DNA of 64,000 bases, taken from positions 298,811-362,810 of the forward strand of contig NW_003314381.1 of assembly GCF_000143415.4 (NCBI RefSeq), written 5' to 3'. The notes beneath the pieces were generated by a model. That model had not been told where the DNA came from. It worked only from the letters and a program-made list of their open reading frames with translations, and ran no database searches. Position numbers and translations under genes: made by a program. How positions within the stretch are numbered: the stretch's first letter is position 1; every line of letters starts with the position of its first letter. Positions 4,202-49,017 of the stretch are shown piece by piece. This stretch comes from Selaginella moellendorffii. Lineage: Eukaryota > Plantae > Lycopodiophyta.

Positions 4202-4226
4202 TTCCATTAAGATCAATAAATTATTA

Positions 4227-13082: not shown

Positions 13083-13257
13083 TGTGAGTGCATGGAATAT
13101 GGAAAAGGAATACAAAAATGTGCATATTAATTAGCCCAAAAACCCTAGCTTATATATAGGAGAGAGTGGTCCGGATTGAAACCAATCCGATGGCTACCAA
13201 AATCCCAGTACACTAATATTAGTATACGGCATCGTAGCCATACACTTGGCCCTCACA
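13083..13257 (-). repeat. 3' LTR of outer gypsy element
   Basis: Roughly 90% identical by eye (about 17 substitutions, mostly transitions, plus a 3-bp indel) to 49018-49189. Confidence 0.95.
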
Positions 13258-13289
13258 TCATCCCCTCCTCTCGGAATAATGGAAGACCA

Positions 13290-15103
13290 TTAGGGTTCTC
13301 TTGTAAATGGGCCGAGATCTGGAGGAACATCAGGAGGAGGCATTGGTAGATTTGTAGATGGTATTAACCGCTCCTGATCCCTTTGTATAAAGCATTTCAA
13401 CTGTTGCACATGCACAATCTCTAGAGGATCGGCCTACTGGACGTCATGCCGAACCTCATAAACTTGTGGTCCAACTTGTTGCAACACCCGATACGGTCCT
13501 TTCCACTGTGCAAGGAGCCCCTTAGATAAACCACATACTGTAAGATGGGGAAAATGGACTAACACCAAATCATCCACTTTGTACTCTGCAAATGGACGAT
13601 GATGGGAGTTGTAACGCCATTGTTGTCCCACTTGTACGCGGCCTAAGTGTCCGGCAAACTTCGCTCGGACAAGTGGAAGAATGCTTGTCAAATATTGATC
13701 CCATGACCTAGCATCCGCAGCTCGTGGCAATCGCGAAGGTAAACCCAGCTCCGTTGGTAATATTGGATCATGACCATATAGAAGTTTATATGGTGAAGCA
13801 CCAATAGAACTTTGCACCCCAGTGACATATGCATACCAAAGAGACGGCAAATAACCATCCCAATTCGAATGCTGAAAGTTCACATACTTCGCAATTATCC
13901 CCTTGAACGTCCGAATGAGCCGTTCCACCTGATAGTCTGATTGTGGATGATAAGCACTCATGAAAGTGTGGTGAATCCCCAATCAAGACATCAAAACATG
14001 AAATGCCTCAACTATAAATGCGGGACCATTATCCGAAAGAATCCACTCTGGACAAGAATGTTGAAACATCACTCGATTGAGGAGGAAGTATCCAATAGCA
14101 GTTGCAGAGGTGCTAACAAGAGCACCAACTTCCACCCAACGAGTCAAATAGTCAGAAGTAATAATAATATACTCTTTGCCAACAGTCAACCGTGGAAAAG
14201 GTCCCATAAGATCAAATGCCACCAACTCAAACGGACGGGAAACTGCAATTGACTCCAATCGTCCTTCCGCAGCTCGAGGGGGAGTATTACGAGCTTTGCA
14301 CCAAACGCAGCTACGCACATACCAGATAATATCACGTCGCATCTTTGGCTAATAGAAAGACTTGCATAGCTTCTCAATTACACAATGATGTCCCATATGC
14401 CCACATAGAACAGGAGAATCATGGTAGGCATGGAGAAATCGCAGAATAAAGATAGAAGGCACCACCAGCCGTAAATGATCATCAGGATCTGTCCCCACAA
14501 AATAAAGAAGGCCATCTTCAAGACGATATTGAGAATGTAAATGCCAGAAAGGCAAGTCATCAGCAAGTGATGCAGGATTCTTAATCCCATCTCGAAGCCT
14601 TCGAATCCATGGCTCAATCTTTTGAGCCTCACAAACCTCATCAAGCGAAGGTAGATCTTGCTCTGCACCTTGTGGACATTGAATGTCAAGTATAGCAACT
14701 GCCGATGGCACAGAATCCTCGTCTAGAAAATCCACAGATGCTGGAATAACAGGCTCGTCAGAAACATGGAAGAGAGTGAAGAAGGAAGAGGAGCTTGAGA
14801 AAGAGCATCAGTATCAGTCATAGAACTCCCTAGGCAATGAACAACATCAAAATCATATATCTGAAGCTTCAAAACCCACCGAGCAGTACGACCAACCAGG
14901 TTCTTCCGCTTTAATAACGAAGTAACAGTAGTATGGTCACCTTCAAGTAATGTCCGAGAACCATATAGATATGCATGAAGTTTCTCGAAACCCCAGACTG
15001 CTGCTAAACACTCCTTCTCTGTCGTGGAGTAGTTCATCTCCGCTAGTTGTAATGTACGGCTTATATATGCAATGGGATGGCACTGACCAGGCACACTCGA
15101 GCT
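13290..15103 (-). pseudogene. Outer gypsy pol: RNase H C-terminus and integrase (H2C2, DDE core, GPY/F), disrupted
   Basis: PIAYISRTL..NYSTTEKECLA; HDSP..GHMG..CVWC; DLMGP, SDNG, HPQSD..VER; WKGPYRV. No chromodomain seen. Confidence 0.92.
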
Positions 15104-15335
15104 TGTGAGACACAAAATCCCTAGGCCCCAAAGTGGAGCCAGAAGGGCGCCACATGGTAGTGGCCGAAGCGAGAGCCAAACGAGCGTAACACGTTTGGAC
15201 CAAAAGCTCCGACTTGAAAAGTCAAGAGCGGGAGTGGAACTCCCAACGAAGTGCTCGAGGAACGAGCACGAAGCGAGCAAAAGGCGAGGCTCCAAAAAGG
15301 GACCCAAAAGGACCAACACATGACACGTGGGAGTG

Positions 15336-15908
15336 TCCGAGATGGACTCGAGTTGGAGTCCGAAGTGGAGTCCGAGATGGACTCGAGATGGAGTCCGAGA
15401 TGGACTCGAGTTGGAGTCCGAAGTGGAGTCCGAGATGGACTCGAGATGGAGTCCGAGATGGACCCGAGATGGAGTCCGAGATGGAGTCCGAGGTGGACCC
15501 GAGATGGACCCGAAATGGAGTCCGAGATGGACCCGAGATGGAGTCCGAGATGGAGTCCGAGATGGAGTCCGAGATGGACCCGAGATGGAGTCCGAGATGG
15601 AGTCCGAGATGGACCCGAGATGGAGTCCGAGATGGAGTCCGAGATGGAGTCCGAGATGGACCCGAGATGGAGTCCGAGATGGACCCGAGATGGACCCGAG
15701 ATGGAGTCCGAGATGGAGTCCGAGATGGAGTCCGAGATGGAGTCCGAAGTCGAGACCGAGACCGGGACCGAGACCGGGACCGAGACCAAGACCGAGACCG
15801 AGATCGGGACCGAGACCGAGACCGAGGCCGAGGCCGAGACCGAGCCCGAGCCCGAGTCCGAGTCCGAATCCGAGTCCGAGTCCGAGTCCGAGTCCGAGTC
15901 CGAGTCCG
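15336..15908 (+). repeat. LTR VNTR: 12-mer CCGAGATGGAGT / 11-mer CCGAGATGGAC grading into 6-mer CCGAG(A/T); present in all eight E-family LTRs
   Basis: Directly visible. Other arrays at ~21238-21822, 23751-24352, 28353-28901, 33038-33856, 39193-39841, 42234-42752 and 45278-45906. Confidence 0.95.
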
Positions 15909-15999
15909 GAGCCTGAGAGGGTGAAAGCCCAAAGCGTTCGTCTCCCAGACCCTGGGGGGTTTGGTGAGCCCCAAAAGTATAGTAAGGGGGAGGACTGCA

Positions 16000-18900
16000 G
16001 TGGAGCCAGTTTGGCCAGGAAAGGCCAGTTTGGCCCAGGAAGGCCAGACCCAGTGTTGGGTGATGAGCTGCCCACTGGGAAGTCCAAGACTAGAGTGAAC
16101 ACAGACTGACAAGCGGGGTAGCTTGGTGAAGTGTTCAAGAGCCGGCTCTAGTTCCCCCGGGAGATCGACTGGCCGATGCTCCCAGTCCAAGTGTGGGTGG
16201 CACTACCTACTTGGATACCAGGCGTGGCTCAACGGAACCCGCTCTAAGCCCATGGCTAGAGCACCTAAAGGCGATAGGTGGGGAGAGTACCCAGGTGGCT
16301 CGCGTAAGGCCACGGTGTTCCGAAATGTTGTCCCAAAGGCCCAGACTGTGGAAAGGAAGAGGAGCAGTCCTCTGGGGTAGTGACCAAGGACACAGTCATG
16401 TGGTGAGGAAGTCCCAGAGGACCGTGGGACTTAGTGGTCGGGCCTGTGGGCCTCGATCCAGTGGCAGTGTTGGCAAACACGGCCAGGGGCAGAAAGGGAC
16501 TTGGTAGGAACTGACAAAGGGACTTTGGGGAAGGCAATTCCCCAGGTCTGTGGGCATCCTAAGGATGCTAAGGAGTGGATCTAGGATGACCACTCGTGGA
16601 CCCATGGCCCAGTCTTGGAGAGACGAGGTGGTGATGCAAGTGGTGTTGAACCACTAGTGCAGCAAAGGTGAATGGGCATGGCCTTAGCGTAACGGGCCGA
16701 GATGTCAGTGGTACCTTTGGGTGTCGGTCTCAGGACCGGACACGTGGAGCACTTGGACCAGGTGCAAGTGTGGAGTGGCATGGATGCCATTCTTGGGGCT
16801 AGCAAGTCCCAAGTCCTGAATTGGACTGATGGAGGTTGTGAATGAGACTCCTCCAAGTGGTCGGAGGTGTGGTTAAGTGACTAAAGTAGAATGGAAAATT
16901 TAGTCGGTTACAATTTGGTATCGGAGCTGTTCCTTAGTCCGACTTTTATTGGTGCTCAAGTATATCACCACTAGTGTTGGCATCGGAAGGTCCGAGGAGT
17001 GGGCCTATCCTTGAGGAGTAGCAAGTCGGGAAGACATGGCTCTCCATTACAGTTCATGTGTGAACTTGTAGACGAGGTGGTGGATAGAAAAGGGCCAATA
17101 ATGGAACGACTTTGGGATCTTGGGAACAGGGCAAGGTTTTCCTCATTGAGTTGAGGATGTGATCCGGATAAGCATTTGTCTCAGCAAATTGGCTAAGGTT
17201 GTTGTGGTAAACAACTAAAGTTGGGATCACGGGAAAGATAGAGACTCCAAAATAATAAAGGAGTCACAAGATTATCCTCATATAGTTGAGGTTGGTGCTC
17301 ATGAATGTGAGACCAAAGGTAATGACCGTGGAAGGTCAAATACGGAAGAGGACTCAAGTCCTTGAAATGGTAGCCGGGGCTACCTCTAATAAATGCTGGA
17401 ACAACCCAAGGAGTTGGGGGTGTATTAAGTGGATGAGTTGGTATTCTCATCACATGGACAAGTAGTCCTAAGGGGCAAAGGTTGCCCCCAGAGCACAAAA
17501 TCAAGTGTCGGAGTAACACTTGTGAAAATAGTCCTTTTGAGTAGGACCGGAATGCAAGATGTGTATTCCAGTGAGCTAGTGCCTCACAAGTAGGACCTTA
17601 CGGGTCGGTGGATTAACCAAGTCCAAAACTGCTAGACGACTCAAGTAGAGTCAAGGGATGGTCCTAAAAGGATTGATAGAAGCATTTGGACTGAGGTGCA
17701 TTGTACCCCACAAAGGATGGGGGGGGATCATAGGATCCAAGGATGAGAACAGAGAGTATCTCATCGATGGCAATGTGCCATGCTAAAGTTATGGGAAAGG
17801 TGTTCCCAGAAGAAAACAACTTTGACATAAAGTTGTGTGTGACCTCTATGGGGCAGTGCTAACAGATGGTTGGCATGAGAAAGAGCGGTGTTGGTCTTGG
17901 CGAAGACTTAGACACGAAGGGAAATGTCATAGAGGTAGGCTCGTGGAGCCGATGGTGTGGAGACACCAAATGTGCCAAGGTGTGATACCTTGAGGCTATG
18001 TTGGTGGGTTCATGAGAACCCCTTGCCAAAGGAATCCCAATGGAAATGGGAATGGCATAGCCTAAGCTGCAGAGCATGCAGTTGGAGTGTGGTGACCCAG
18101 ATAGTGATGGAGGTGTGAAAGCACCAAGCAATGAGTTGTAGGACTTGACAACTATGAGGCAACTAAGCAAGAGGTGCAAAATAACTGATTAAACGGGTAG
18201 AAGGTAGCTACCCAAGACTTCTAGTATAGGGAAGTCGGATATACCCTTACGGGGGATAAGTTTCTTATGTTGCGATATAGTAAGTCAATGTCATAAAAGG
18301 AAATACTCATTGTCAAGAAAGCCATCATTGGGACACCCGAACACTCTAGAACACCAGAAGGTGGTGTTTGATATCGCGAGGGCAATGGATAAAGCCCAAG
18401 GGACTAAGTCCCTAGCGAATGATGGATAGAAGGTGCTATCCAAATGTCCAAGGTTGCGGAGACAGGAGAGGACTGTCTACCCAAGTTGGACAAAGCCAAA
18501 AATGGAATTTTGGCAAGGCTAGTGATGGGCATGTAAAGGCCCATAAGCAACAAATGTAATCCCAGTGTGTGGGATTATAAGGTGAGCATACCCGGATTGA
18601 GGAACCACTCCCTGGGCTATTGGGTAGGTTCATCCCTAAGAATACTTGCTAAGGCATGACAGAAAGTGCAAAGCTATCCTCCTGGTCTGGAGGAGAATGA
18701 CCGAAGGAAAGGTGTGAAGCCAAAGGCAAGTAGTATTGGGATGGAACTAAACCATAGAAATCAAAGGACATATCCAACAGTGGTTATGAAAGTTGGGAGT
18801 GGAGAAGCAAGAGGGTGCTCGAGGATGTTGTTGCTAGCAACCGTGATGCCATGGAGAGTCTAAAATATGGAATTGTCCATGTTAGACTATATGGCAACTA

Positions 18901-21005
18901 TAAAGCTTGCGAAAGGGGAGGCCTTAGCAAGTTGAGGGACAGAGTTCCTTCAAGGTTCCCAAAGACGATTCTAGGTAGCGTAGTACCTAGAAAGGCCAAG
19001 TGTAAATGGTTCATGGAACGCGCGAAATCAGAGTGGCGCAGCAGAAGCGTGGTCTTGAAGCTTGCCATGAGGCAAGGTTATCAAGGTTAGGGAAGTAGTT
19101 CCCGAGTGTTCAAAGAGAGGGCTTTGAACGAAAGTCGATGGTCAAGGACTTTCACGCTTATGCAGGAACCATGTTACAATGGTCGGAGGACTTGCCAAGT
19201 GAGATTGGCACGTCGGGGGAACGAAGACCCTAGTTGAAGGTGATAACTTCAAAAAGGGTGGGCCATGGGGCCGAGCATGGAGGAGTCCATGCATGATCAC
19301 AGACATGTCAAGTGAGAGGACTTGGCAGTGTGGAGGAACTAGGTTCCTAAGCTGTGATCTGTAGCGCGCTTTAAAAATAAGTTGGTGCACCGGCGTGGGG
19401 AGTCACGCCAGGCATCTAGGGTGATGCCGTCCGTAGATGCATATACGGAGGTTGGGTTCGAGTCCCGACCCTCTAGTGCTTGGGTTCGAGTCCCAAATCA
19501 CTAGGGCGTGGTGATGGTTTGGAATATGAGGACACTCATATTTCGGTGGTCATGGACTCTCAGTGGGGAGACTGGTTTGGGCACACCGCCAAGCGAGGGA
19601 TGCCTCGGAGTCGTGATGCACGGTTAGATTGCTTAGTGTGAAAGCTCAGCATATCTAACTTGAACACTTTGGTGCAAGTGGCACCAAGGTCGTGGTGAGT
19701 GAGATGGGGACACCTAATCTCAGTTGCTATGAACCCTTGGCCATAAGGGCTAGCTTGGGTGCACCGCCAAGTGTGGGGGATGCCCCCGGGGTTATAGTCA
19801 ACAACTTGGAGGTCTAGAAAACCAAGTACCTCTTGGCAACTCTGTTAAGGTGCCAAGGTGAGATCACTAGGTGATCTTATGGCCAGAAAAGGACAAGGTC
19901 CTTGGTTGGCTAAGGAATGAAGTTCCTGGTTCAAAATGTTGAAATTGAACTGTTTAAGGTGGTGTGGCTTGGTCGTGATAACCAAGTGGGAAGAGCACCT
20001 AAGGGAAATAAACTATGTCCGTGCGATGGCATAGTGAGTCCGAGGAAAGTAGTCTCTATAAAAGACCCATGGGAGGGTCACGAAGTTGGGCCGTGGATAG
20101 AGCCCATAGCAGAAGATGCTAAAGAGACGTACTAGGGGTGAACGTCCTCCGGACTTGGCAAAGAAGAGTCTTTGCTATGGAACCGAAACAATACCTCAAG
20201 GAGGGAGGTAGAGATTCGATGTTGCTTGGTGCAACAATCAACGGATAGGAGCAAAAGATGAGTGGCCAAGATAGGGCCGTGGAATCCCTTGGAAGGAATC
20301 CAAGTGACAAAGTTAGGCGAGGAACACTAATGTGTTGGACGCTAACAAGTTGCGGGAAAGGAAGTGTGTTTCCAAGGAGGGATTCCGAAATGCTCCGATT
20401 TGGTGAAAGTGGAAGCTCCAAGGGAGGGAGCAGTAAGGTAGCCAAATGATAGGGCCATGAACAGCCCTAGCACAAAGTATGATAACTGGAACTTTGGCAC
20501 GAAATAAAAGAGAGGATGATGGTGCCCTCGAGTAGAGAACTTCCTAGGATGGGAAGTGGAGTTGCACAAAAGGTGCAAGGCAAGGTGTCGGAGACACCTA
20601 GGAAATTGACTCCAAGAAGTCAAAATTCAAAGTTCCCAAAGTGCAAAGGTTATATCGATGGAAATCGAGACTACTCGAGAAGGAGTAGTGGGACTGACTT
20701 AGAGAAGGGTCTCTAAGGGGTTTAGCGAGAACTGAACCAATAAAAAGGAGCAAACCACCCCAGGTGGTCAAGTGAGTCTCTAAGCTGGAGAGACTATCCT
20801 CCTTAGAGGATGGGCAAGGCATGGTGAGCCTTTGGTGTCGAACCATTGATGAATATGGAGAAGGCATGGTGAGCCTTCAATGTCAAACCATTGACAAATA
20901 TTGGCTAGGGGCCAAGGATGGAAATGGTAACACATGTGAGTGTTACTTTATAAAATGGTTTACCGTTCGATGAGGACATCGAACTTCGTCTATGGGTGGT
21001 GGAGT
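16000..21005 (+). ncRNA. Putative long structured RNA of E1 (R-U5 plus interior), tiled with short hairpins
   Basis: About 50 interior stem-loops found by eye, plus about 20 in the LTR downstream of the TATA-like motif. Loop-biased variation among E1-E4. Transcription not shown. Confidence 0.6.
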
Positions 21006-22825
21006 TGTGAGACACAAAATCCCTAGGCCCCAAAGTGGAGCCAGAAGGGCGCCACATGGTAGTGGCCGAAGCGAGAGCCAAACGAGCGTAACACGTTTGG
21101 ACCAAGAGCTCCGACTTGAAAAGTCAAGAGCGGGAGTGGAACTCCCAACGAAGTGCTCGAGGAACGAGCACGAAGCGAGCAAAAGGCGAGGCTCCAAAAA
21201 GGGACCCAAAAGGACCAACACATGACACGTGGGAGTGTCCGAGATGGACTCGAGTTGGAGTCCGAAGTGGAGTCCGAGATGGACTCGAGATGGAGTCCGA
21301 GATGGACTCGAGTTGGAGTCCGAAGTGGAGTCCGAGATGGACTCGAGATGGAGTCCGAGATGGACCCGAGATGGAGTCCGAGATGGAGTCCGAGGTGGAC
21401 CCGAGATGGACCCGAAATGGAGTCCGAGATGGAGTCCGAGATGGACCCGAGATGGAGTCCGAGATGGAGTCCGAGATGGAGTCCGAGATGGACCCGAGAT
21501 GGAGTCCGAGATGGAGTCCGAGATGGACCCGAGATGGAGTCCGAGATGGAGTCCGAGATGGAGTCCGAGATGGACCCGAGATGGAGTCCGAGATGGACCC
21601 GAGATGGACCCGAGATGGAGTCCGAGATGGAGTCCGAGATGGAGTCCGAGATGGAGTCCGAAGTCGAGACCGAGACCGGGACCGAGACCGGGACCGAGAC
21701 CAAGACCGAGACCGAGATCGGGACCGAGACCGAGACCGAGGCCGAGGCCGAGACCGAGCCCGAGCCCGAGTCCGAGTCCGAATCCGAGTCCGAGTCCGAG
21801 TCCGAGTCCGAGTCTGAGTCCGGAGCCTGAGAGGGTGAAAGCCCAAAGCGTTCGTCTCCCAGACCCTGGGGGGTTTGGTGAGCCCCAAAAGTATAGTAGG
21901 GGGAGGACTGCAGTGGAGCCAGTTTGGCCAGGAAAGGCCAGTTTGGCCCAGGAAGGCCAGACCCAGTGTTGGGTGATGAGCTGCCCACTGGGAAGTCCAA
22001 GACTAGAGTGAACACAGACCGACAAGCGGGGTAGCTTGGTGAAGTGTTCAAGAGCCGGCTCTAGTTCCCCCGGGAGATCGACTGGCCGATGCTCCCAGTC
22101 CAAGTGTGGGTGGCACTACCTACTTGGATACCAGGCGTGGCTCAACGGAACCCGCTCTAAGCCCATGGCTAGAGCACCTAAAGGCGATAGGTGGGGAGAG
22201 TACCCAGGTGGCTCGCGTAAGGCCACGGTGTTCCGAAATGTTGTCCCAAAGGCCCAGACTGTGGAAAGGAAGAGGAGCAGTCCTCTGGGGTAGTGACCAA
22301 GGACACAGTCATGTGGTGAGGAAGTCCCAGAGGACCGTGGGACTTAGTGGTCGGGCCTGTGGGCCTCGATCCAGTGGCAGTGTTGGCAAACACGGCCAGG
22401 GGCAGAAAGGGACTTGGTAGGAACTGACAAAGGGACTTTGGGGAAGGCAATTCCCCAGGTCTGTGGGCATCCTAAGGATGCTAAGGAGTGGATCTAGGAT
22501 GACCACTCGTGGACCCATGGCCCAGTCTTGGAGAGACGAGGTGGTGATGCAAGTGGTGTTGAACCACTAGTGCAGCAAAGGTGAATGGGCATGGCCTTAG
22601 CGTAACGGGCCGAGATGTCAGTGGTACCTTTGGGTGTCGGTCTCAGGACCGGACACGTGGAGCACTTGGACCAGGTGCAAGTGTGGAGTGGCATGGATGC
22701 CATTCTTGGGGCTAGCAAGTCCCAAGTCCTGAATTGGACTGATGGAGGTTGTGAATGAGACTCCTCCAAGTGGTCGGAGGTGTGGTTAAGTGACTAAAGT
22801 AGAATGGAAAATTTAGTCGGTTACA

Positions 22826-23515
22826 GAGCTCTTTTGCATTAACACACCTCCAAGACCAATGTCAAAAGCATCCACGTGCAAAATAAAAGGTCGAGTGTAG
22901 TCAGGATATGCCAAAACTAGAGGAGTTGTCAATAACTCTTTGAGATCCCCGAACGCTCGCTCACAATCCGGAGACCAGATGAAAGATGACGTTGATGACT
23001 TCAGCAACGCTCGCAATAGTGCAATGTGATCAGAAAGATGATCCACAAAATGCTCGAGATACTGCACCTTGCCCAAGAAGCGCTGCACATCATTCACACA
23101 CTTTAGAGTAGGGAACTTTAGAACAGCCACAAGTTTGTTAGGATCAACTTCCAAACCCTCACGAGAAATACAGTACCCAAGATAAGTTGTGTCCTTGGAT
23201 CCAAACACACACTTCGACCACTTCAACTTTAAACCAACGTCGCGTAGCCGATCCAACACTTTACAAACATCACGAACGTGCTCCTCCCACGTCCCCTCCG
23301 AGTGGATCAAGACATAATCAATGTAGTCAGCAGTCACCTCTGGCATATCGTAAAGAACCTCGCCCATCATCCGTTGAAAAGTTGCTGGAGCATTGTTCAA
23401 ACCAAATGGCATGACCAAGAACTCGTACAAACCAAATGGTGTACGAAAAATAGTCTTAGGAATATCTTCTTCGGCCATCGGTACTTGCCAGTACCCAGAA
23501 GCAAGATCTAGCTTG
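22826..23515 (-). pseudogene. Outer gypsy pol: RT core and RNase H start
   Basis: DLASGYWQVP..TPFGLYEFLVMPFGLNNAPATFQR; YIDY (YxDD mutated); FILHVDA..GLGGVLMQ. Confidence 0.95.
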
Positions 23516-26500
23516 TGTGAGACACAAAATCCCTAGGCCCCAAAGTGGAGCCAGAAAGGGTGCCACGTGGTAGTGGCCGAAGCAAAAGCCAAATGAGCGT
23601 AACACGTTTGGACTAAAAGCTCTAACTTGGAAGGTCGAGAGCGGGAGTGAAACTCCCAACAAAGTGCTTGAGGAGCGAGCACGAGGAAACCAATAAGCAA
23701 GGCTCCAAAAAGGGACCCAAAAAGGACCAACACATAACACGTGGAAGTGTCTGAGATGGATCCGAGATGGACCCGAGACGGAGTCCGAAATGGAGTCCAA
23801 GACAGAGTCCGAGATGGAGTCCAAGATGGAGTCTAAGACGGAGTCCGAGATGGAGTCTGAGATGGAGTCCAAGATGGATCCGAGATGGACCCAAGACAGA
23901 GTCCAAAATGGAGTCCGAGACAGAGTTCGAGATGGAGTCCGAGACGGAGTCCAAGATGGAGTCCGAGACGGAGTCCAAGATGGAGTCCGAGACGGAGTCC
24001 AAGATGGACCCGAGATGAAGTCCGAGATGGAGTCCGAGATGGACCCGAGATGGAGTCCGAGATGGACCTGAGATGGAGTCCGAGATGGATCCGAGATGGA
24101 CCCGAGATGGAGTCCGAGATGGATCCGAGATGGACCCGAGATGGAGTCCAAGATGGACCGAGACGGAGTCCGAGATGGACCCGAGATGGAGTCCAAGATG
24201 GACCGAGACGGAGTCCGAGATGGAGTCCCAGAAGGATCTGAGATGGAGTCCGAGGTCGAGATTGAGACCGGGACCGAGACCGAGACCGAGGCCAAGGCCG
24301 AGACCGAGCCCGAGTCCGAGTCCAAGTCCGAGTCCGAGTCCGAGTTCGAGTCTGAGAGGGTGAAAGCCCAAAGCGTTCGTCTCCCAGACCCTGGGGGGTT
24401 TGGTGAGCTCCAAAAGTATAGTAAGGGGGAGGACTACAGTGGAGCCAGTTTGGCCAAGAAAGGCTAGTTTGGCCCAAGAAGGCCAGACCTAGTGTTGGGT
24501 GATGAACTGACCACTGGGAAGTCCAAGACTAGAGTAAATATGGACCAACAAGCGGGGTAGCTTGGTGAAGTGTTCAAGAGCCGACTCTAGTTCCCTCGGG
24601 AGATCGACTAACCGATGCTCCCAGTCCAAGTGTGGGTGGCACTACCTACTTGGATACCAGGCATGGCTCAATGGAACCTCACTCTAAGCCCATGGCTAGA
24701 GCACCTAAAGGCAGAAGGTGGGGAGAGTACCCACGGGGCTCGTGTAGGCCCACGGTGTTCCGAAATGTTGTCCCGGAGTCTCAAATGGGGGAAAGGAGGA
24801 GGAGCAGTCCTCTAGTGTAGTGACTAAGGATACAGTCACATGGTGAGGAAGTCCCAGAGGACCATGGGACTTAGTGGTCGGGCCTGTGGTCCTTGATCTA
24901 GTGGCAGTGTTGGCGAACATGGCCATGGACAAAAAAGGGACTTGGTAGGAACTGACATAGGGATATTTGGGAAGGTTATTCCCCATATCTGTGGGCATCC
25001 TAAGGATGCTAAGGAGTGGATCTGGGATGACCACTCATGGACAGATGGCCCAGTCTTGGAGAGACAGGATTGTGATGCAAGTGGTATTGGACCACTAGTG
25101 CGGCAAAGGTGATTGGGCATGGCCTTAGCGTAACAGGCTGCTATGTCAGTGGCACCTTTGAGTGTTGGTCATGGGATCGGACACGTGGAGCACTTGGACC
25201 AGGTGCAAGGGTTGAGTGGCATGGATGCCATTCTTGGGGCTAGCAAGTCCCAAGTCCTGAATTGGACTTATGGAGGTTGTGAATGAGACTCCTCCAAGTG
25301 GTCAGAGGTGTGGTTAAGTGACTAAAGTAGAATGGAAAATTTAGTCGATTACAACTTGGTATTGGAGCTGTTCCTTGGTGCTCAAGTATATCACCATTGA
25401 TGCTGGCATCGGAAAGTCCTAGGAGTGGGCCTATCCTTGAAGAGTAGCATGTCGAGAGGACATGGCTCTCCACTCAAGTTCATGCGTGAACTTGGGCGCG
25501 ATGTGGTGGATAGAAAAGGGTTAGTAAGGGAACGACTTTGGGATCTTGGGAACAGTATAAGGGTTTCCTCAGAGAGTTGAGGATGTGATCCAGATGAGCG
25601 TTTGACTTAGCAAACTGGCTGATGTAGTTGTGGTAAACAACTACAGTTGGGATCACGGGAAAGATGCGGACTCCAAAACAATAAAGGAGTCACAAGATTA
25701 CCCTTATATAGTTGAGGTTGGTACTCATAAATTTGAGACCAGAATTGGTGACTATGGGAGGTCATATAGAAGAGGACACCAGTCTTTGAAATGGTAGCTG
25801 GGGCTACCTTTAATAAATGCTGGAACAACCCAAGGAGTTGGGGGTGTACTTAAAGATGAGTTGGTATTCTCATCACATGGATAAGTAGTCCTAAGGGGCA
25901 AAGGTTAGCCCTAGAGGGAATAATCAAGTGTCGGAATAACACTTGCAAAGATGGTCCTTTTGAGTAGGATATGAATATAAGAAGTTGTATTCCAGTGAGT
26001 TGGCACCTCAAAGACTAAGACTTTGCAGGTTGTTGGATTAGCAAAGTCCAAAATGCTAGATGACTCAAGTGGAGACACGGAATGGTCCTAAAGGATTGGT
26101 TGAAGCATTTGGACTGAGGTGTATAGTGCCCCATGAGGTATGGGGAGGATCATAAGATCCAAGTATGAGAACAATAGGTATCTCATTGATGGCAGAATGT
26201 GCCATACTAAAATTGTGGGAAAGATGTTCTCAGAAGAAAGCAACTTTGGCCCAGAGTTGGGTGCAAACACTATGATGCGGTACTAACGGATAGTTAGCAT
26301 GAGGAACAACTATATTGGTCTTGGCAAAGACCTAGACACTAATAAGTAGTGTCATAAGGATAGGCTCGTGGGGCCAATGGTGTGGAGACACCAAATGTGC
26401 CAAGGTGTGATACCTTGAGGTTATGTTGGTGGGTTCATAAGAACCCCTTGCCAAGGGAATCCCAACGGAAATGGGAATGGTATAGCCTAAGCTGGAAGAC

Positions 26501-27349
26501 ATGTGGTAGAGTGTGGTGACCAAAACAATGATGGAGGTGTGAAAGCACCAGCAATGAGTTGTAAGACTTGACAACTATGAGGCAACTAAGCAAAAGGTGC
26601 AAGATAATTGGTTAAACTAGTAGAAGGTAGCTACCTAAGACTTCTTAATGGCATAAGGAAGTTAAATATACCTTTATGAGGGATAAATTGCTTATGTTGC
26701 AATATAGTAAGTCAATGTTGTAAAAGGGAATGCTCATTGTCAAAGAGGCCATTATTTGGGACATCCAAACACTCTAGAACACTAGGAGGTGGTGTTTGAT
26801 GTCGCAAGGGCAATAGATAAGGCCCAAGGGACTAAGTCCCTAGCGAAGGATGGATAGAAGGTGCTACTCAAATGTCCAAGGTTGCGAAGACGGGAGAAGA
26901 TTGTTTACCCGAATTGGACAAAGCCAAAAATGGAATTTTGGCAAGGTTAGTGATGGGCATGTAAGGGCCTATAAGCAACAACGTTAATTCCGGTGTGTGG
27001 GATTATAAGGTGAGCATACCTAGATTGAGGAACCACTCCCTAGGCTATTGGGTTGGTTCATCCCTAAGAATACTTGCTAAGGCATGATAGAAAGTGCAAA
27101 GCTATCCTCTTAGTCTGGAGGAGAATGACTAAAGGAAAAGTGTAAGGCCAAAAGCAAGTAGTAAGGGGATAGAATCAAACCATAGGAATCAAAGGGCATA
27201 ACCCAGGGTGGTTATGCTAAGTGGGAGTGGAGAATCAAATGGGGGCTCGAGGGTGTTGTTGTTAGCAACTGTGATGCCATAGAGAGTCTAAAATATGGAG
27301 TTGTCCATGTTAAACTATATAGCAACTAAAAAGCTTGTGTAAAGGGAGG

Positions 27350-30300
27350 TGTAAGCGACTAAATTTTCCATTCTACTTTAGTCACTTAACCACACCTTCG
27401 ACCACTTGGAGGAGTCTCACTCACAACCTCCTTAGCCCAATTCAGGACTTGGGACTTGCTAGCCCCGAGAATGGCATCCTTGCCACTCAACACTTGCACA
27501 TGGTCCAAGTGCTCCACGTGTCTGGTCCCAAGACCGACACCCAAAGGTACCACTGACATCTCGGCCCGTTACGCTAAGGCCATGCCCACTCACTTTTGCT
27601 GCATTAGTGGTCCAATACCACTGGCATCACCATCCCGTCTCGCCAAGACTGGGCCATGTGTCCACGAGTGGTCATCCTAGATCCACTCCTTAGCATCCTT
27701 AGGATGCCCACAGACCTGGGGAATCGCCTTCCCCAAAGTCCCTTTGTCAGTTCCTACCAAGTCCCTTTCTGCCCCTGGCTGTGTTTGCCAACACTGCCAC
27801 TGGATCGAGGCCCACAGGCCTGACCACTAAGTCCCATGGTCCTTTGGGACTTCCTCACCACACGACTGTGTCCTTGGTCACTACCCCAGAGGACTGCTCC
27901 TCTTCCTTTCCACAGTCTAGGCCTTTGGGACAACATTTCGGAACACCGTGGCCTTACGCGAGCCACCTGGGTACTCTCCCCGCCTTTCGCCTTTAGGTGC
28001 TCTAGCCATGGGCTTAGAGCGAGGTTCCGTTGAGCCACACCTGGTATCCAAGTAGGTAGTGCCACCCACACTTGGACTGGGAGCATCGGCCAGTCGATCT
28101 CCCGGGGGAACTAGAGCCGGCTCTTGAACACTTCACCAAGCTACCCCGCTTGTCGGTCCGTGTTCACTCTAGTCTTGGACTTCCCAGTGGGCAGCTCATC
28201 ACCCAACACTGGGTCCGGCCTTCCTGGGCCAAACTGGCCCTTCCTGGCCAAACTGGCTCCACTACAGTCCTCCCCCTGCTATACTTTTGGGGCTCACCAA
28301 ACCCCCCAGGGTCTGGGAGACGAACGCTTTGGGCTTTCACCCTCTCAGGCTCCGGACTTGGACTCGGACTCGGACTCGGACTCGGACTCGGATTCGGAAT
28401 CGGACTCGGGCTCGGGCTCGGTCTCGGCCTCGGCCTCGGTCTCGGTCTCAGTCCCGATCTCGGTCTCGGTCTCGGTCTCGGTCCCGGTCTCGGTCCCGGT
28501 CTCGGTCTCGACTTCGGACTCCATCTCGGACTCCATCTCGGGTCCATCTCGGACTCCATCTCGGACTCCATCTCGGGTCCATCTCGGACTCCATCTCGGA
28601 CTCCATGTCGGGTCCATCTCGGGTCCACCTCGGACTCCATCTCGGACTCCATCTCGGACTCCATCTCGGGTCCATCTCGGACTCCACTTCGGACTCCAAC
28701 TCGGGTCCATCTCGGGTCCACCTCGGACTCCATCTCGGACTCCATCTCGGACTCCACTTCGGACTCCAACTCGGGTCCATCTTGGGTCCACCTCGGACTC
28801 CACTTCGGACTCCAACTCGGGTCCATCTCGGACTCCACTTCGGACTCCAACTCGAGTCCATCTCGGACTCCACTTCGGACTCCAACTCGAGTCCATCTCG
28901 GACACTCCCACGTGTCATGTGTTGGTCCTTTTGGGTCCCTTTTTGGAGCCTCGCCTTTTGCTCGCTTCGTGCTCGTTCCTCGAGCACTTCGTTGGGAGTT
29001 CCACTCCCGCTCTTGACTTTTCAAGTCGGAGCTTTTGGTCCAAACGTGTTACGCTCGTTTGGCTCTCGCTTCGGCCACTACCATGTGGCGCCCTTCCGGC
29101 TCCACTTTGGGGCCTAGGGATTTTGTGTCTCACAACTCCACCACCCATAGACGAAGTTCGATGTCCTCATCGAACAGTAAACCCTTTCATAAAGTAACAC
29201 CCACACGTGTTACCATTTCCATCCTTGGCACCTAGCCAATCTTTGTCTATGGTTTGACATCAAAAGCTCACCATGCCTTGTCCTTCCTTTAAGGAGCATA
29301 GTCTCTCCAACTTAGAGACTGATTGGACCACATGTAATGGTTCTCTCCTTTTATTGGTTTAGTTCTCGCTAAACCTCTTAGAGACCCTTCTCTAAGTCAA
29401 TCCCACTACTCCTTCTCGAGTAGTCTCAATTTCCATCGATATAACCTTTGCACTTTGGAACTTTGAATTTTGACTTCTTGGAGTCAATTTCCTAGGTGTC
29501 TCCAACACCTTGCCTTGCACCTTTTGTGCAACTCCACTTCCCATCCTAGGAAGTTCTTTACTCGAGGGCACCATCATCCTCTCTTCTATTTCGTGCCAAA
29601 GTTCCAGTTATCATACTTTGTGCTAGGGCTGTTCATGGCCCTATCATTTGGCTACCTTACCACTCCCTCCCTTGGAGCTTCCACTTTCGCCAAATTGGAG
29701 CATTTCGGAATCCCTCCTTGGAAACACACTTCCTTTCCCGCAACTTGTTAGCGTCCAACACATTAGTGTTCCTCGACTAACTTTGTCACTTGGATTCCTT
29801 CCAAGGGATTCCACGGCCCTATCTTGGCCACTCATCTTTTGCTCCTATCCGTTGATTGTTGCACCAAACAACATCGAATCTCTACCTCCCTCCTTGAGGT
29901 ATTGTTTCAGTTCCATAGCAAAGACTCTTCTTTGCCAAGTCCGGAGGATGTTCACCCCTAGTACGTCTCTTTAGCATCTTCTGCTATGGGCTCTATCCAC
30001 GGCCCAACTTCGTGACCCTCCCATGGGTCTTTTATAGAGACTACTTTCCTCGGACTCACTATGCCATCGCACGGACATAGTTTATTTCCCTTAGGTGCTC
30101 TTCCCACTTGGTTATCACGACCAAGCCACACCACCTTAAACAGTTCAATTTCAACATTTTGAACCAGGAACTTCATTCCTTAGCCAACCAAGGACCTTGT
30201 CCTTATCTGGCCATAAGATCACCTAGTGATCTCACCTTGGCACCTTAACAGATTTGCCAAGAGGTACTTGGTTTTCTAGACCTCCAAGTTGTTGACTATA

Positions 30301-33300
30301 ACCCCGGGGGCATCCCCCACATTTGGCGGTGCACCCAAGCTAGCCCTTACGGCTAAGGGTTCATAGCAACTGAGATTAGGTGTCCCCATCTCACTCACCA
30401 CGACCTTGGTGCCACTTGCACCAAAGTGTTCAAGTTAGATATGCTGAGCTTTCACACTAAGCAATCTAACCGTGCATCACGACTCCGAGGCATCCCTCGC
30501 TTGGCGGTGTGCCCAAACCAGTCTCCCCACTGAGAGTCCATGACCACCGAAATATGAGTGTCCTCATATTCCAAACCATCACCACGCCCTAGTGATTTGG
30601 GACTCGAACCCAAGCACTAGAGGGTCGGGACTCGAACCCAACCTCCGTATATGCATCTACGGACGGCATTACACAGGATGCCTGGCGTGACTCCCCACGC
30701 CGGTGCACCAACTTATTTTTAAAGCGTGCTACAGATCACAACTTAGGAACTTAGTTCCTCCACACTGCCAAGTCTTCTCACTTGACATGTCTGTGATCAT
30801 GCATGGACTCCTCCATGCTCGGCCCTATGGCCCACCCTTTTTGAAGTTATCACCTTCAACTAGGGTCTTTGTTCCCCCGACGTGCCAATCTCACTTGGCA
30901 AGTCCTCCGACCATTGTAACATGGTTCCTGCATAAGCGTGAAAGTCCTTGACCATCGACTTTCATTCAAAGCCCTCTCTTTGAACACTCGGGAACTACTT
31001 CCCTAACCTTGATAACCTTGCCTCATGGCAAGCTTCAAGACCACGCTTCTGCTGCGCCACTCTGATTTCGCGCGTTCCATGAACCATTTACACTTGGCCT
31101 TTCTAGGTACTACGCTACCTAGAATCGTCTTTGGGAACCTTGAAGGAACTCTGTCCCTCAGCTTGCTAAGGCCTCCCCTTTCGCAAGCTTTATAGTTGCC
31201 ATATAGTCTAACATGGACAATTCCATATTTTAGACTCTCCATGGCATCACGGTTGCTAGCAACAACATCCTCGAGCACCCTCTTGATTCTCCACTCCCAA
31301 CTTTCATAACCACTGTTGGATATGCCCTTTGATTTCTATGGTTCGATTCCATCCCAATACTACTTGCCTTTGGCTTCACACCTTTCCTTCGGTCATTCTC
31401 CTCCAGACTAGGAGGATAGCTTTGCACTTTCTATCATGCCTTAGCAAGTATTCTTAGGGATGAACCTACCCAATAGCATAGGGAGTGGTTCCTCAATCCG
31501 GGTATGCTCACCTTATAATCCCACACATTGGGATTACATTATTGCTTATGGGCCTTTACATGCCCATCACTAGCCTTGCCAAAATTCCATTTTTGGCTTT
31601 GTCCAACTCGGGTAGACAGTCCTCTCTTGTCTCCGCAACCTTGGACATTTGGATAGCACCTTCTATCCATCATTCGCTAGGGACTTAGTCCCTTGGGCTT
31701 TATCCATTGCCCTCGCGACATCAAACACCACCTTTTGGTGTTCTAGAGTGTCCGGGTGTCCCAATGATGGCTTTCTCGACAATGAGTATTTCCTTTTATG
31801 ACATTGACTTACTATATCGCAACACAAGCAACTTATCCCCCGTAAGGGTATATCCAACTTCCTTATGCTATTAAGAAGTCTTGGGTAGCTACCTTCTACC
31901 CGTTTAACCAGTTATTTTGCACCTCTTGCTTAGTTGCCTCATAGTTGTCAAGTCCTACAACTCATTGCTTGGTGCTTTCACACCTCCATCATTATCTGGG
32001 TCACCACACTCCAACTGCATGCTTTGCAGCTTAGTGTAAGCGACTAAATTTTCCATTCTACTTTAGTCACTTAACCACACCTTCGACCACTTGGAGGAGT
32101 CTCACTCACAACCTCCTTAGCCCAATTCAGGACTTGGGACTTGCTAGCCCCAAGAATGGCATCCTTGCCACTCAACACTTGCACATGGTCCAAGTGCTCC
32201 ACGTGTCCGGTCCCAAGACCGACACCCAAAGGTACCACTGACATCTCGGCCCGTTACGCTAAGGCCAGGCCCATTCACCTTTGCTGCACTAGTGGTCCAA
32301 TACCACTTGCATCACCACCTCGTCTCTCCAAGACTGGGCCATGTGTCCACGAGTGGTCATCCTAGATCCACTCCTTAGCATCCTTAGGATGCCCACAGAC
32401 CTGGGGAATCGCCTTCCCCAAAGTCCCTTTGTCAGTTCCTACCAAGTCCCTTTCTGCCCCTGGCCGTGTTTGCCAACACTGCCACTGGATCGAGGCCCAC
32501 AGGCCCGACCACTAAGTCCCACGGTCCTCTGGGACTTCCTCACCACATGACTGTGTCCTTGGTCACTACCCCAGAGGACTGCTCCTCTTCCTTTCCACAG
32601 TTTGGGCCTTTGGGACAACATTTCGGAACACCGTGGCCTTACGCGAGCCACCTGGGTACTCTCCCCACCTATCGCCTTTAGGTGCTCTAGCCATGGGCTT
32701 AGAGCGAGGTTCCGTTGAGCCACGCCTGGTATCCAAGTAGGTAGTGCCACCCACACTTGGACTGGGAGCATCGGCCAGTCGATCTCCCGGGGGAACTAGA
32801 GCCGGCTCTTGAACACTTCACCAAGCTACCCCGCTTGTCGGTCCGTATTCACTCTAGTCTTGGACTTCCCAATGGTCAGTTCATCACCCAACACTGGGTC
32901 TGGCCTTCCTGGGCCAAACTGGCCTTTCTTGGCCAAACTGGCTCCACTGCAGTCCTCCCCCTACTATACTTTTGGAGCTCACCAAACCCCCCAGGGTCTG
33001 GGAGACGAATGCTTTGGGCTTTCACCCTCTCAGGCTCCGGACTCGGACTTGGACTCGGACTCGGACTCGGACTCGGACTCGGACTCGGATTCGGACTCGG
33101 ATTCGGACTCGGACTCGGGCTCGGGCTCGGTCTCGGCCTCGGCCTCGGTCTCGGTCTCGGTCCCGATCTCGGTCTCGGTCTCGGTCTCGGTCCCGGTCTC
33201 GGTCCCGGTCTCGGACTCCATCTCGGACTCCATCTCGGACTCCATCTCGGACTCCATCTCGGACTCCATCTCGGGTCCATCTCGGACTCCATCTCGGACT

Positions 33301-42300: not shown

Positions 42301-42985
42301 GGTCTCGGTCTCAGTCCCGATCTCGGTCTCGGTCTCGGTCTCGGTCCCGGTCTCGGTCCCGGTCTCGGTCTCGACTTCGGACTCCATCTCGGACTCCATC
42401 TCGGGTCCATCTCGGACTCCATCTCGGACTCCATCTCGGGTCCATCTCGGACTCCATCTCGGACTCCATGTCGGGTCCATCTCGGGTCCACCTCGGACTC
42501 CATCTCGGACTCCATCTCGGGTCCATCTCGGACTCCACTTCGGACTCCAACTCGGGTCCATCTCGGGTCCACCTCGGACTCCATCTCGGACTCCATCTCG
42601 GACTCCACTTCGGACTCCAACTCGGGTCCATCTTGGGTCCACCTCGGACTCCACTTCGGACTCCAACTCGGGTCCATCTCGGACTCCACTTCGGACTCCA
42701 ACTCGAGTCCATCTCGGACTCCACTTCGGACTCCAACTCGAGTCCATCTCGGACACTCCCACGTGTCATGTGTTGGTCCTTTTGGGTCCCTTTTTGGAGC
42801 CTCGCCTTTTGCTCGCTTCGTGCTCGTTCCTCGAGCACTTCGTTGGGAGTTCCACTCCCGCTCTTGACTTTTCAAGTCGGAGCTTTTGGTCCAAACGTGT
42901 TACGCTCGTTTGGCTCTCGCTTCGGCCACTACCATGTGGCGCCCTTCCGGCTCCACTTTGGGGCCTAGGGATTTTGTGTCTCACT
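27350..42985 (-). mobile_element. E3: same family, inverted, inserted in the E2 interior; contains E4
   Basis: 3' LTR 27350-29134, 5' LTR 41231-42985. TSD GGAGG (27345-27349, 42986-42990). PBS 41216-41227. The equivalent empty site is visible in E1 near 18915. Confidence 0.95.
32035..40074 (-). mobile_element. E4: same family, inserted in the E3 interior
   Basis: 3' LTR 32035-34088, 5' LTR 38189-40074. TSD CTTAG (32030-32034, 40075-40079). PBS 38174-38185. Confidence 0.95.
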
Positions 42986-45900: not shown

Positions 45901-46907
45901 CGAGTCTGAGAGAGTGAAAGCCCAAAGCATTCGTCTCCCAGACCCTGAGGGGTTTGGTGAGCTCCAAAAGTATAGTAAGGGGGAGGACTACAGTGGAGCT
46001 AGTTTGGCCAAGAAAGGCTAGTTTGGCCCAGGAAGGCCAGACCCAGTGTTGGGTGATGAACTGACCACTGGGAAGTCCAAGACTAGAGTGAATACAGACC
46101 GACAAGTGAGGTAGCTTGGTGAAGTGTTCAAGAGCCGGCTCTAGTTCCCCCGAGAGATCGACTGGCCGATGCTCCCAGTCCAAGTGTGGGTGGCACTACC
46201 TACTTGGATACCAGGCGTGGCTCAATGGAACCTCGCTCTAAGCCCATGGCTAGAGCACCTAAAGGCGGAAGGTGGGGAGAGTACCCACAGGGCTCGCGTA
46301 GGCCCACGGTGTTCCGAAATGTTGTCCCGGAGTCTCAAATGGGGGAAAGGAGGAGGAGCAGTCCTCTAGTGTAGTGACTAAGGATACAGTCACATGGTGA
46401 GGAAGTCCCAAAGGACCATGGGACTTAGTGGTTGGGCCTGTGGGCCTTGATCTAGTGGCAGTGTTGGCGAACATGGCCATGGACAAAAAAGGGACTTGGT
46501 AGGAACTGACAAAGGGATATTTGGGAAGGCTATTCCCCATGTTTGTGGGCATCCTAAGGATGCTAAGGAGTGGATCTGGGATGACCACTCGTGGACGGAT
46601 GGCCCAGTCTTGGAGAGACAAGATTGTGATGCAAGTGGTATTGGACCACTAGTGCGGCAAAGGTGATTGGGCATGGCCTTAGCGTAACAGGCTGCTATGT
46701 CAGTGGCACCTTTGAGTGTTGGTCATGGGATCGGACACGTGGAGCACTTGGACCAGGTGCAAGGGTTGAGTGGCATGGATGCCATTCTTGGGGCTAGCAA
46801 GTCCCAAGTCCTGAATTGGACTTATGGAGGTTGTGAATGAGACTCCTCCAAGTGGTCAGAGGTGTGGTTAAGTGACTAAAGTAGAATGGAAAATTTAGTC
46901 GCTTACA

Positions 46908-47760: not shown

Positions 47761-47854
47761 AACACTGGATGAACTGGTGCCGAGTGAACCCCTTGATGAT
47801 ACTCCTGAAAGAAAGATGGAGGGGTCACTGATTTATTCGCGCAAGGTCTCTCCG

Positions 47855-48787: not shown

Positions 48788-49017
48788 GAAGACGAACAAA
48801 GAAAGAGCAAAAGAAGATAAATGACAAAAAGTTGAAAGGAAATAGTAGATTTAGACAATGCAAAAAGCTAGATCTAAACCAAAATCCTGAAAGGAAAGAA
48901 CAAAATAAAAGAAATGGAAAAAACTAGATCTAGACGATGCAAAAACTAGATCCAAACCAAAATCCCAAATCCAAGCACTCCCCAGGGACAATCAAAAGTG
49001 CCCTTCACCTCCACCAA

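Follow-up and report, generated by a model that had tools for sequence, protein, structure and literature searches.

The analyzed 64-kb window, a stretch of 64,000 nucleotides from the genome of the lycophyte Selaginella moellendorffii, contains four copies of a family of recently mobile, non-autonomous, LARD-type LTR retrotransposons, here called E (copies E1, A, B, and D). The structure of E1 goes far beyond chance: apart from a 12-nt repeat array in the LTRs, perfect Watson–Crick stem-loops follow one another throughout the element at about one per 28 nt. Evidence for constraint on this structure is moderate. The best explanation, to which we assign a probability of about one half, is that the hairpin architecture of these elements has been selected and results in a compact, stable, and silencing-resistant RNA.

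Anatomy and genomic setting of the E elements

E1 (15104–22825, + strand) is a complete LTR retrotransposon of 7.7 kb with 1.8-kb LTRs, a TSD, a PBS, and a PPT (Table 1). The PBS lies 3 nt past the LTR end and has one mismatch to the consensus of plant initiator-Met tRNA. All four copies are flanked by 5-bp TSDs, and identity between the two LTRs of a copy declines from 99.8% (E1) through 99.1% (A and B) to 96.3% (D). The copies are carried by a gypsy element, with which they have only the LTR termini TGTGAG...ACA in common. A second scaffold lacks the entire nest, including the host gypsy, and has a clean empty site in its place; the insertion site is polymorphic.

Table 1. Features of the E elements and their host element, in window coordinates
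Feature	Position	Strand	Remarks
Host gypsy, LTRs of ~175 bp	13083..49189	-	Fragments of integrase, RT/RNase H, and protease; all four E copies lie within it
TSD GAGCT, left copy of E1	15099..15103	.	Identical 5 nt at 22826-22830
E1 5' LTR, TGTGAG...GGTTACA, 1.8 kb	15104..16912	+	Matches 3' LTR; hairpin excess in non-tandem parts
12-nt tandem array in LTR, GTCCGAGATGGA and variants	15335..15908	+	TRF
PBS TGGTATCGGAGC, initiator-Met tRNA type	16916..16927	+	3 nt past LTR end
E1 non-coding interior, 4.09 kb (4093 nt), ~145 local hairpins	16913..21005	+	Folding and counts; no ORF or domain
84-nt block with two T-arm/B-box-like hairpins (GGGTTCGAGTCCC)	19451..19534	+	Identical in all four copies; z = -5.1
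45-nt two-hairpin unit	20816..20901	+	Present twice in E1 and B, once in A and D
PPT GGGTGGTGGAG, directly 5' of 3' LTR	20994..21004	+	Within 53-nt block invariant in all copies
E1 3' LTR	21006..22825	+	99.6-99.9% identity to 5' LTR outside tandem array
Copy D, 5' part (LTR and interior)	23516..27349	+	~12% diverged from E1; TSD GCTTG
Copy A, 3' part	27350..32034	-	Sequence comparison
Copy B, complete, inside A	32035..40074	-	5-bp duplication; E1 equivalent 18062-18066
Copy A, 5' part, inside D	40075..42985	-	Sequence comparison; 5-nt duplication
Copy D, 3' part (interior and LTR)	42986..46907	+	D pieces overlap by 5 nt, the TSD of A

No autonomous partner of E was found in the window, and a sensitive blastn search with E1, covering the remaining window sequence and two scaffolds, returned no distant relatives. 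Relatives of the host gypsy RT are at most 47% identical, so no Selaginella loci were recovered by way of this protein. Of two metagenome scans, one with an exact 41-mer had no match, and one with a twin T-arm pattern gave 38 loci, none of which was similar to E.

The longest ORF in the E1 interior encodes 108 amino acids, and a search of 5.8 billion proteins found no homologue of it; an LTR ORF also has none in the protein collection. None of the 47 ORF pieces (at least 35 aa, both strands) carries a retroelement Pfam domain, on which basis a gag-pol remnant was rejected. Together with the LTRs, TSD, PBS, and PPT, this bears out a preliminary description of this DNA as a non-coding LTR retroelement. 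An Rfam search of E (E <= 1) gave just sub-threshold matches to MIR2933 and SCARNA18 and nothing at or above a gathering score, with no 5S rRNA, tRNA, or hammerhead ribozyme; ARAGORN found no tRNA either. Membership in a known RNA family was rejected on these grounds.

Hairpin excess and folding energy

Hairpins were counted between positions 16913 and 21001 as perfect stems closing loops of 3–15 nt, with dinucleotide shuffles as control. At minimum stem lengths of 5, 6, and 7 bp, the E1 interior contains 126, 69, and 24 hairpins, whereas shuffles contain 37.8 ± 5.8, 9.5 ± 3.0, and 2.5, respectively. The count of 69 corresponds to z ~20 and a seven-fold excess. For stems of at least 6 bp, shuffling within blocks of 15–60 nt gave about 8 hairpins and Markov models of order 1–5 gave 9–13, while mirror repeats are at chance (14 versus 15). 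We therefore rejected a composition or k-mer artefact.

With counts far above every shuffle control, the earlier portrayal of the interior as a near-continuous string of local hairpins holds. All hairpins that it named are present at or near their coordinates, although a few of the stems given as 9–10 bp comprise 7–8 pairs plus a wobble or mismatch. Hairpins that it had placed in the LTR after a TATA-like motif also exist, but they are not confined to that part: the non-tandem parts of the LTR are hairpin-rich as well, including its start and the stretch 5' of the putative TATA. The tandem array is the sole part of E1 without hairpin tiling (7 stems of at least 5 bp versus 9 by chance).

Folding energies give a similar picture. 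With pairs limited to a span of 40 nt, the E1 interior folds at −1125 kcal/mol versus −806 ± 25 and forms 145 hairpin elements with a median length of 20 nt and a median linker of 4 nt. Mean MFE z-scores in 120-nt windows are −2.2 on the plus strand and −2.5 on the minus strand (about 0 in the flanks), and the MFED of 350-nt fragments, a measure of how far their folding energy exceeds that of shuffles, is 26.8% for the sense and 35.9% for the antisense strand (1–2% in the flank). The fraction of pairs spanning more than 50 nt is 0.25, compared with 0.40 in shuffles, and the predicted accessibility of 21-mers lies below that of shuffles 3-fold on the sense and 6.5-fold on the antisense strand.

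A per-kb map of the window revealed that the hairpin excess coincides with E-family DNA and is present in all four copies. The density is 16–17 hairpins per kb in the young copies E1, A, and B and 12 per kb in D, which is old and decayed. The host gypsy, the outer element that had been suggested for comparison, has no such excess. Other hairpin peaks, at 4–5 kb, 12–13 kb, and 49–50 kb, consist of AT-rich TTATAA-type palindromes that were counted repeatedly and are a different phenomenon.

Stem and linker architecture

Stems in E have 5–9 bp and loops 3–8 nt. No perfect stem in the hairpin count is longer than 9 bp, and stacked helices in the span-limited fold reach 12 bp at most. A hairpin small-RNA or miRNA precursor locus, for which a stem of at least about 20 bp is needed, was rejected on this basis. 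Loops and linkers are 69–77% purine and 6–12% C, and the short, purine-rich, C-poor linkers cannot pair with one another. Perfect stem-loops and non-pairing linkers therefore predict a beads-on-a-string RNA, in which long-range pairs are few and every duplex is too short to look like a Dicer substrate. G-U pairs make up 11% of the pairs in native stems versus 17% in shuffles; since the stems are poor in G-U and the two strands have an equal energy excess, there is nothing to connect the structure with the sense RNA specifically.

Variation between copies

For an unbiased test of constraint, stems were defined in D and variation was scored among E1, A, and B. The D-defined stems vary at 3.4%, compared with 6.0% for non-stem positions, which is 44% less (odds ratio 0.56, p = 3e-4). 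Stratified by base, the Mantel–Haenszel odds ratio is 0.57, and stems are less variable for all four bases. These values come from four copies, three of them 96–97% alike, with the pieces of split copies aligned separately and no consensus built.

According to the preliminary description, many substitutions fall in loops or keep pairing through G-U. Stems do vary less, but pairing is kept through G-U no more often than expected: stem changes that yield G-U are depleted almost as much as those that yield A-C, and the asymmetry is weak. Nor did the proposed covariation check reveal any excess, with 6 compensatory double substitutions observed versus 9 expected, a covariation term of −1.8 out of −207 kcal/mol in RNAalifold, and compensatory support in 5 of 197 pairs. 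The suggested selection for local structure thus retains structure beyond chance and moderate constraint on its side, but not covariation. A McDonald–Kreitman-like test on the LTR pairs, meant to separate selection from mutation bias, was underpowered. In it, post-insertion differences between the LTRs of a copy, which are presumably neutral, likewise tend to avoid stems, though not significantly (ratio 0.74, n = 64), so stems may have a lower mutation rate.

Alternative explanations

The hairpins could instead be a multiplied packaging signal, an array that would bind the zinc knuckles in the nucleocapsid of the partner's Gag and let a parasite with many stem-loops and exposed purines out-compete the partner RNA for encapsidation. 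In retroviruses, packaging signals consist of clustered stem-loops that expose G, E depends on proteins supplied in trans because it lacks ORFs, and its purine-rich loops contain about 31% G, with GGAG as the commonest tetraloop (4 of 41). We nevertheless consider this unlikely. The leader after the PBS, whose 288 nt hold 6 hairpins with a minimum stem of 5 bp, has the same density as the rest, the first part of the LTR is filled with hairpins too, no recurrent motif was found among the highly diverse loops and stems, and the antisense strand, which is not packaged, is equally structured. That the structure was selected in single-stranded DNA, such as minus-strand cDNA, or in both transcripts, where it might hinder sense–antisense annealing to dsRNA, is a further possibility. 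In its favor, z-scores are equal and MFED is larger on the antisense strand, accessibility falls most on that strand, and G-U, which corresponds to an A-C mismatch on the opposite strand, is avoided. Strict Watson–Crick pairing is, however, equally expected from selection for stability alone, and we regard this reading as improbable.

A quite unlikely source of the hairpins is mutation itself, if reverse transcription or replication, by switching templates or copying folded-back strands, produced short inverted repeats without function that accumulate in an unconstrained interior. Perfectly Watson–Crick, strand-symmetric stems would follow from such a process, as would the absence of covariation and the lean of post-insertion differences away from stems, and an 11-nt indel in D adds the exact complementary arm of the adjacent hexamer. 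This signature is nevertheless present in only one of the seven indels of at least 4 nt between copies, and stems are less variable for all four bases in independent lineages. Stem length is tightly bounded at 5–9 bp, and interrupted longer stems occur at chance, a test that is uninformative about decaying longer stems because the stems of E are too short. Furthermore, the unpaired segments have a distinct, purine-rich and C-poor composition, and the host gypsy, with similar replication machinery, lacks the excess. Decayed gag-pol, or an artefact of composition or low complexity, has a negligible probability, given domain-free ORF pieces, a longest ORF without homologue, mirror repeats at chance, and an excess that survives both shuffling in local blocks and order-5 Markov models.

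In the explanation that we favor, selection on the architecture of a LARD-type element, purifying selection would keep the hairpins in those lineages that go on transposing. The likeliest benefit would be a compact, stable, poorly accessible, and untranslated genomic RNA. Such an RNA would be attacked poorly by siRNA-guided slicing, RNA-dependent RNA polymerases, and nucleases, while its exposed purine-rich loops could stay open to Gag or nucleocapsid supplied in trans by an autonomous partner. Shielding, stability, or Gag capture would be candidate roles of the structure, as would compaction or avoidance of long dsRNA, which the preliminary description proposed.

Comparison with known systems

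LARDs are defined by an internal sequence of more than 4 kb (PMC9033089), and the E1 interior, with 4093 nt, is just above this limit. Like LARDs such as Sukkula of barley, E combines long LTRs, a PBS, and a PPT with a non-coding interior that exceeds 4 kb and is conserved between copies, and it is presumably mobilized in trans. Unlike that of the cereal LARDs, the host of E is a lycophyte, and E is placed with LARDs by its structure. Within our comparison, which leaves aside the structures of Kalendar et al. (2004), we found neither a description of a regular chain of ~20-nt perfect hairpins with purine linkers in LARDs nor a report of a folding-energy excess at the level of E.

The closest parallels in folding are RNA viruses with GORS (genome-scale ordered RNA structure), in which paired sites are less variable and pairings poorly conserved, and for which MFED values of 7–23% are quoted, with 23.4% as the top value for a vertebrate virus (PMC7642675). 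Both systems have hundreds of successive short-range stem-loops along the whole RNA, a high MFED, reduced predicted accessibility, less variable paired sites, and pairings without classical covariation (PMC7642675). The MFED of E, 27–36%, is above the quoted viral range. E is a non-coding retrotransposon with strict Watson–Crick, strand-symmetric stems, whereas GORS is known from coding RNA viruses, and the relevant defense would be plant RNA silencing for E and vertebrate innate sensors for these viruses. As a chromosomal retrotransposon whose compaction is predicted, E is an analogue of GORS genomes, not a member of the class.

TRIMs such as Cassandra and Helenus, the latter of which exists in S. 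moellendorffii (PMC10886601), and retrozymes are also non-autonomous LTR elements with structured RNAs. They are a few hundred bp long, however, and carry a small-RNA or ribozyme sequence in the LTR, whereas E is 7.7 kb long and has its T-arm-like motif in the interior rather than the LTR. The packaging element Psi consists of stem-loop clusters with exposed purines that are recognized by nucleocapsid, and is a localized leader element of a few specific hairpins. E has stem-loops and exposed purines in common with it, but contains ~145 non-homologous hairpins over the whole element.

Implications

Non-autonomous LTR elements make up a large share of plant genomes, and selection on their non-coding interiors is largely unknown. 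The E family displays an extreme and easily measured trait, with a seven-fold hairpin excess, a 27–36% energy excess, and a beads-on-a-string design, in a small sequenced genome with very young copies and a polymorphic insertion site. This combination opens several questions to direct testing: whether a retroelement transcript is shielded from silencing or decay by pervasive RNA structure, whether such structure aids Gag capture, or whether the hairpins are created by reverse transcription itself. The family also connects the biology of retrotransposons with that of persistent RNA viruses, whose pervasive structure is unexplained. We tentatively suggest that a gene-less retrotransposon may have evolved, and may keep by selection, a virus-like, genome-scale ordered structure that exceeds that of the quoted RNA viruses. 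Its 6–7-kb RNA would consist of ~200 independent short hairpins and non-pairing purine spacers, possibly a general route to stability and to hiding from RNA silencing while being copied by the proteins of another element. With hairpins far above chance, E may show how a gene-less parasitic RNA persists.

An LTR retrotransposon family nested in a gypsy element

Self-comparison and reading of the junctions identified a complete LTR retrotransposon, E1, and three further copies of the same family (A, B, and D), all of which lie within a gypsy element carrying integrase, RT/RNase H, and protease fragments. Identity among E1, A, and B is 96-97%, and D is ~12% diverged from all three. The LTR pairs are 99.8% identical in E1, which marks it as a very recent insertion, 99.1% in A and B, and 96.3% in D. 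Both nesting splits (A in D, B in A) are flanked by a 5-nt duplication.

Coordinates and characteristics of the E family, its host gypsy, and other repeats in the window
Feature	Position	Characteristics
E1	15104-22825	complete LTR retrotransposon
E1 5' LTR	15104-16912	TGTGAG...GGTTACA
E1 3' LTR	21006-22825	TGTGAG...GGTTACA
E1 target duplication		5 bp, GAGCT
E1 primer-binding site	starts three bases past 5' LTR	TGGTATCGGAGC
E1 interior	16913-21005	
E1 polypurine tract	ahead of 3' LTR	GGGTGGTGGAG
12-nt tandem array	15335-15908, 21237-21822, and remaining LTRs	units GTCCGAGATGGA and CCGAGA-type variants
84-nt identical block	19451-19534	also in A, B, and D at the equivalent positions
45-nt unit	20816-20901	two hairpins
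Copy D	23516-27349 plus 42986-46907	target duplication GCTTG; split by A
11-nt segment unique to D	~44570	E1 equivalent 20495
Copy A	27350-32034 plus 40075-42985	minus strand; split by B
Copy B	32035-40074	nested in A
Host gypsy	13083-49189	minus strand
Host gypsy LTRs	49018-49189 and 13083-13257	very short (~175 bp), only ~88% alike
Direct segmental duplication	4206-10235 and 49223-55808	~6 kb, 85-92% identity, kinase-like ORFs
Second repeat pair	2946-4173 and 11586-12973	adjoins the ~6-kb duplication
39-nt tandem repeat	7162-7435	near-perfect, 7 copies, 99% matches; within overlapping ORFs of both strands
Single-exon kinase ORF	57710-58999	minus strand
GC-rich stretch	63000-64000	10 perfect hairpins vs 3 expected; unrelated to the E family

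The preliminary description of E1 as a non-coding LTR retroelement was borne out. Besides the LTRs, target duplication, primer-binding site, and polypurine tract, its interior contains ORFs of at most 108 aa, and no retroelement domain was found on either strand, in the ten longest of these or in 37 more pieces of 35 aa or longer. A homologue search of the protein collection with the 108-aa ORF returned nothing, no Rfam family exceeded threshold in the element, and ARAGORN called no tRNA. By the usual criteria, the E family is thus a LARD-type (large retrotransposon derivative), non-autonomous LTR retrotransposon (PMC9033089, PMC7215508). The 12-nt array of the LTRs varies in copy number between LTRs, even inside one element; it also yields long spurious ORFs and a sub-threshold Rfam match to MIR2933.

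The termini of the host gypsy LTRs (TGTGAG...CACTCACA) are similar to those of the E family (TGTGAG...TTACA), and its primer-binding site and polypurine tract are unlike those of E. Identity to the window is 100% for scaffold GL377685.1 and ~97% for GL377604.1. The latter lacks the entire 36-kb nest of host gypsy and four E copies and has a clean empty site at 19640-19900 of the compared stretch; therefore, a single polymorphic gypsy copy and its surroundings received all four E insertions, a pattern suggestive of targeted or regional integration. The kinase ORF is encoded at 100% identity by two scaffolds only, both from NCBI assembly GCA_000143415.2, which is that of Selaginella moellendorffii (PMC11276031).

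Hairpin excess and architecture of the predicted fold

Perfect stems with 3-15-nt loops are far more frequent in the E1 interior than in dinucleotide shuffles, with 126, 69, 24, and 7 hairpins of at least 5, 6, 7, and 8 bp against 37.8, 9.5, 2.5, and 0.5, respectively. This excess persists when shuffling is confined to blocks of 15-60 nt (~8 hairpins) and under Markov models up to order 5 (~13), and mirror repeats, counted as a control, are at chance level. Folding energies agree: the mean MFE z in 120-nt windows is -2.2 and -2.5 compared with ~0 in the flanks, and the span-limited MFE of the interior is -1125 against -806 +/- 25 kcal/mol. In 350-nt fragments, the excess folding energy over shuffled controls (MFED) of B reaches 24.6% sense and 36.2% antisense, similarly to E1 (see below), compared with 1-2% in the flank. 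The claim of a hairpin-tiled interior therefore holds against shuffled controls, and also against the outer gypsy, in which no hairpin enrichment was found whereas all four E copies are enriched. A per-kb map of the window assigns the excess to E-family DNA, with 16-17 hairpins in each kb of E1, A, and B and 12 in the older D; other local peaks are AT-rich palindromes, hence not the E-type pattern. Within the LTR, hairpins had been noted after a TATA-like motif. The stretch around the supposed promoter is indeed enriched, but so are all other non-tandem parts, including the first 230 nt.

The span-limited fold comprises 145 hairpin elements with a median length of 20 nt and a median linker of 4 nt. 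Helix lengths peak at 5-6 bp and seldom exceed 8 bp, loops are mostly of 3-8 nt, and extension of stems across mismatches is at chance level. Stems have a balanced composition, and the unpaired parts (hairpin loops, internal loops, and linkers) consist of 69-77% purine and just 6-12% C. Unpaired segments are therefore unable to pair with each other, in keeping with which a smaller fraction of pairs spans more than 50 nt (0.25 vs 0.40 in shuffles). G-U pairs account for 11% of pairs (17% in shuffles), and on both strands 8-mers and 21-mers are predicted to be less accessible than in shuffles. Sequences vary widely among stems and among loops; the most frequent tetraloop, GGAG, represents 4 of 41.

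At 84 nt, the longest block identical across all four copies contains a pair of hairpins, 28 nt from each other, that carry the tRNA T-arm/B-box sequence GGGTTCGAGTCCC; the window has 9 occurrences of the motif GGTTCGANTCC, where 0.15 would be expected. The fold of 19380-19560 has z = -5.1. No tRNA was called in the block, and Rfam gave only insignificant mascRNA- and tRNA-Sec-like alignments. The block may be a functional element, such as a primer/RT contact, a TFIIIC site, or a tRNA mimic.

Variation and turnover of stems

Stems were defined in D and variation was scored among E1, A, and B, which avoids ascertainment bias in a set of four copies, three of them close relatives. Protein searches and metagenome scans brought in no further copies. 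Variable sites make up 3.4% of stems, 6.3% of loops, and 5.8% of other positions (odds ratio 0.56, p = 3e-4), and the reduction is seen for each of the four bases on its own (Mantel-Haenszel odds ratio 0.57) and for MFE-defined pairs (4.1% vs 6.6%). Differences between the LTRs of D, A, and B that arose after insertion gave a stem rate 0.74 of the non-stem rate, which is not significant (n = 64) and compatible with 1 or 0.56. Substitutions had been proposed to fall in loops or to retain pairing through G-U. The former part stands; one-sided stem transitions giving G-U are themselves depleted (~0.66 of expectation), less strongly than those giving A-C (~0.5), a bias significant in just one of four non-independent comparisons. 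Covariation did not emerge: compensatory double changes were not enriched (6 vs 9 expected in a permutation preserving the substitution spectrum), and RNAalifold, run on a 600-nt block, gave a covariation term of -1.8 kcal/mol and double changes in 5 of 197 pairs.

Individual hairpins turn over, since many are broken in one or the other lineage. The aligned region, comprising part of the LTR and the interior, holds 85 E1 hairpins whose stems reach 6 bp or more; D keeps 36 of these intact, shows only G-U differences in 18, and has one disrupted pair in 22 and at least two in 9. In the reverse comparison, 22 of 58 hairpins of D are disrupted in E1. E1 and B have two copies of the 45-nt unit and A and D have one, so tandem duplication can add or remove hairpin units. 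The 11-nt segment unique to D is the exact complementary arm of a neighboring TGGCAC and creates a new hairpin; it arose by a template-switch-type insertion in D or was deleted in the E1 clade. At 17197-17225 and 18768-18800 (E1 coordinates), B has the D state with the hairpin intact, and E1 and A carry several clustered stem-breaking changes. Copy B thus resembles a recombinant of different lineages, such as template switching of co-packaged RNAs would produce.

Interpretation

The degree and regularity of its local structure are what distinguish the E element. The best parallel is GORS (ordered RNA structure at the scale of the genome) in persistent RNA viruses, which form hundreds of consecutive short-range stem-loops with MFEDs of 7-15% (PMC7642675). 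The viral maximum of 23.4% (PMC7642675) is below the 26.8% sense and 35.9% antisense of E1. In these viruses, paired sites vary less than unpaired ones and pairings are poorly conserved (PMC7642675), and E has both properties. The literature searched contained no MFED or GORS analysis of retrotransposons, and no such element described in Selaginella.

Because of this likeness, selection for structure is the favored explanation, the main point it leaves unexplained being the strict Watson-Crick, strand-symmetric stems. Selection acting on the two strands alike or on the cDNA appears improbable, and a purely mutational origin of the hairpins, in a family in which paired sites vary less, is only slightly less doubtful. 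As to function, which we infer, the main rival is that the hairpins serve Gag capture, an unlikely reading that nevertheless ranks ahead of the other two. Selection for structure as such would act in transposing lineages, and its outcome would be a compact, stable, poorly accessible, and untranslated RNA.
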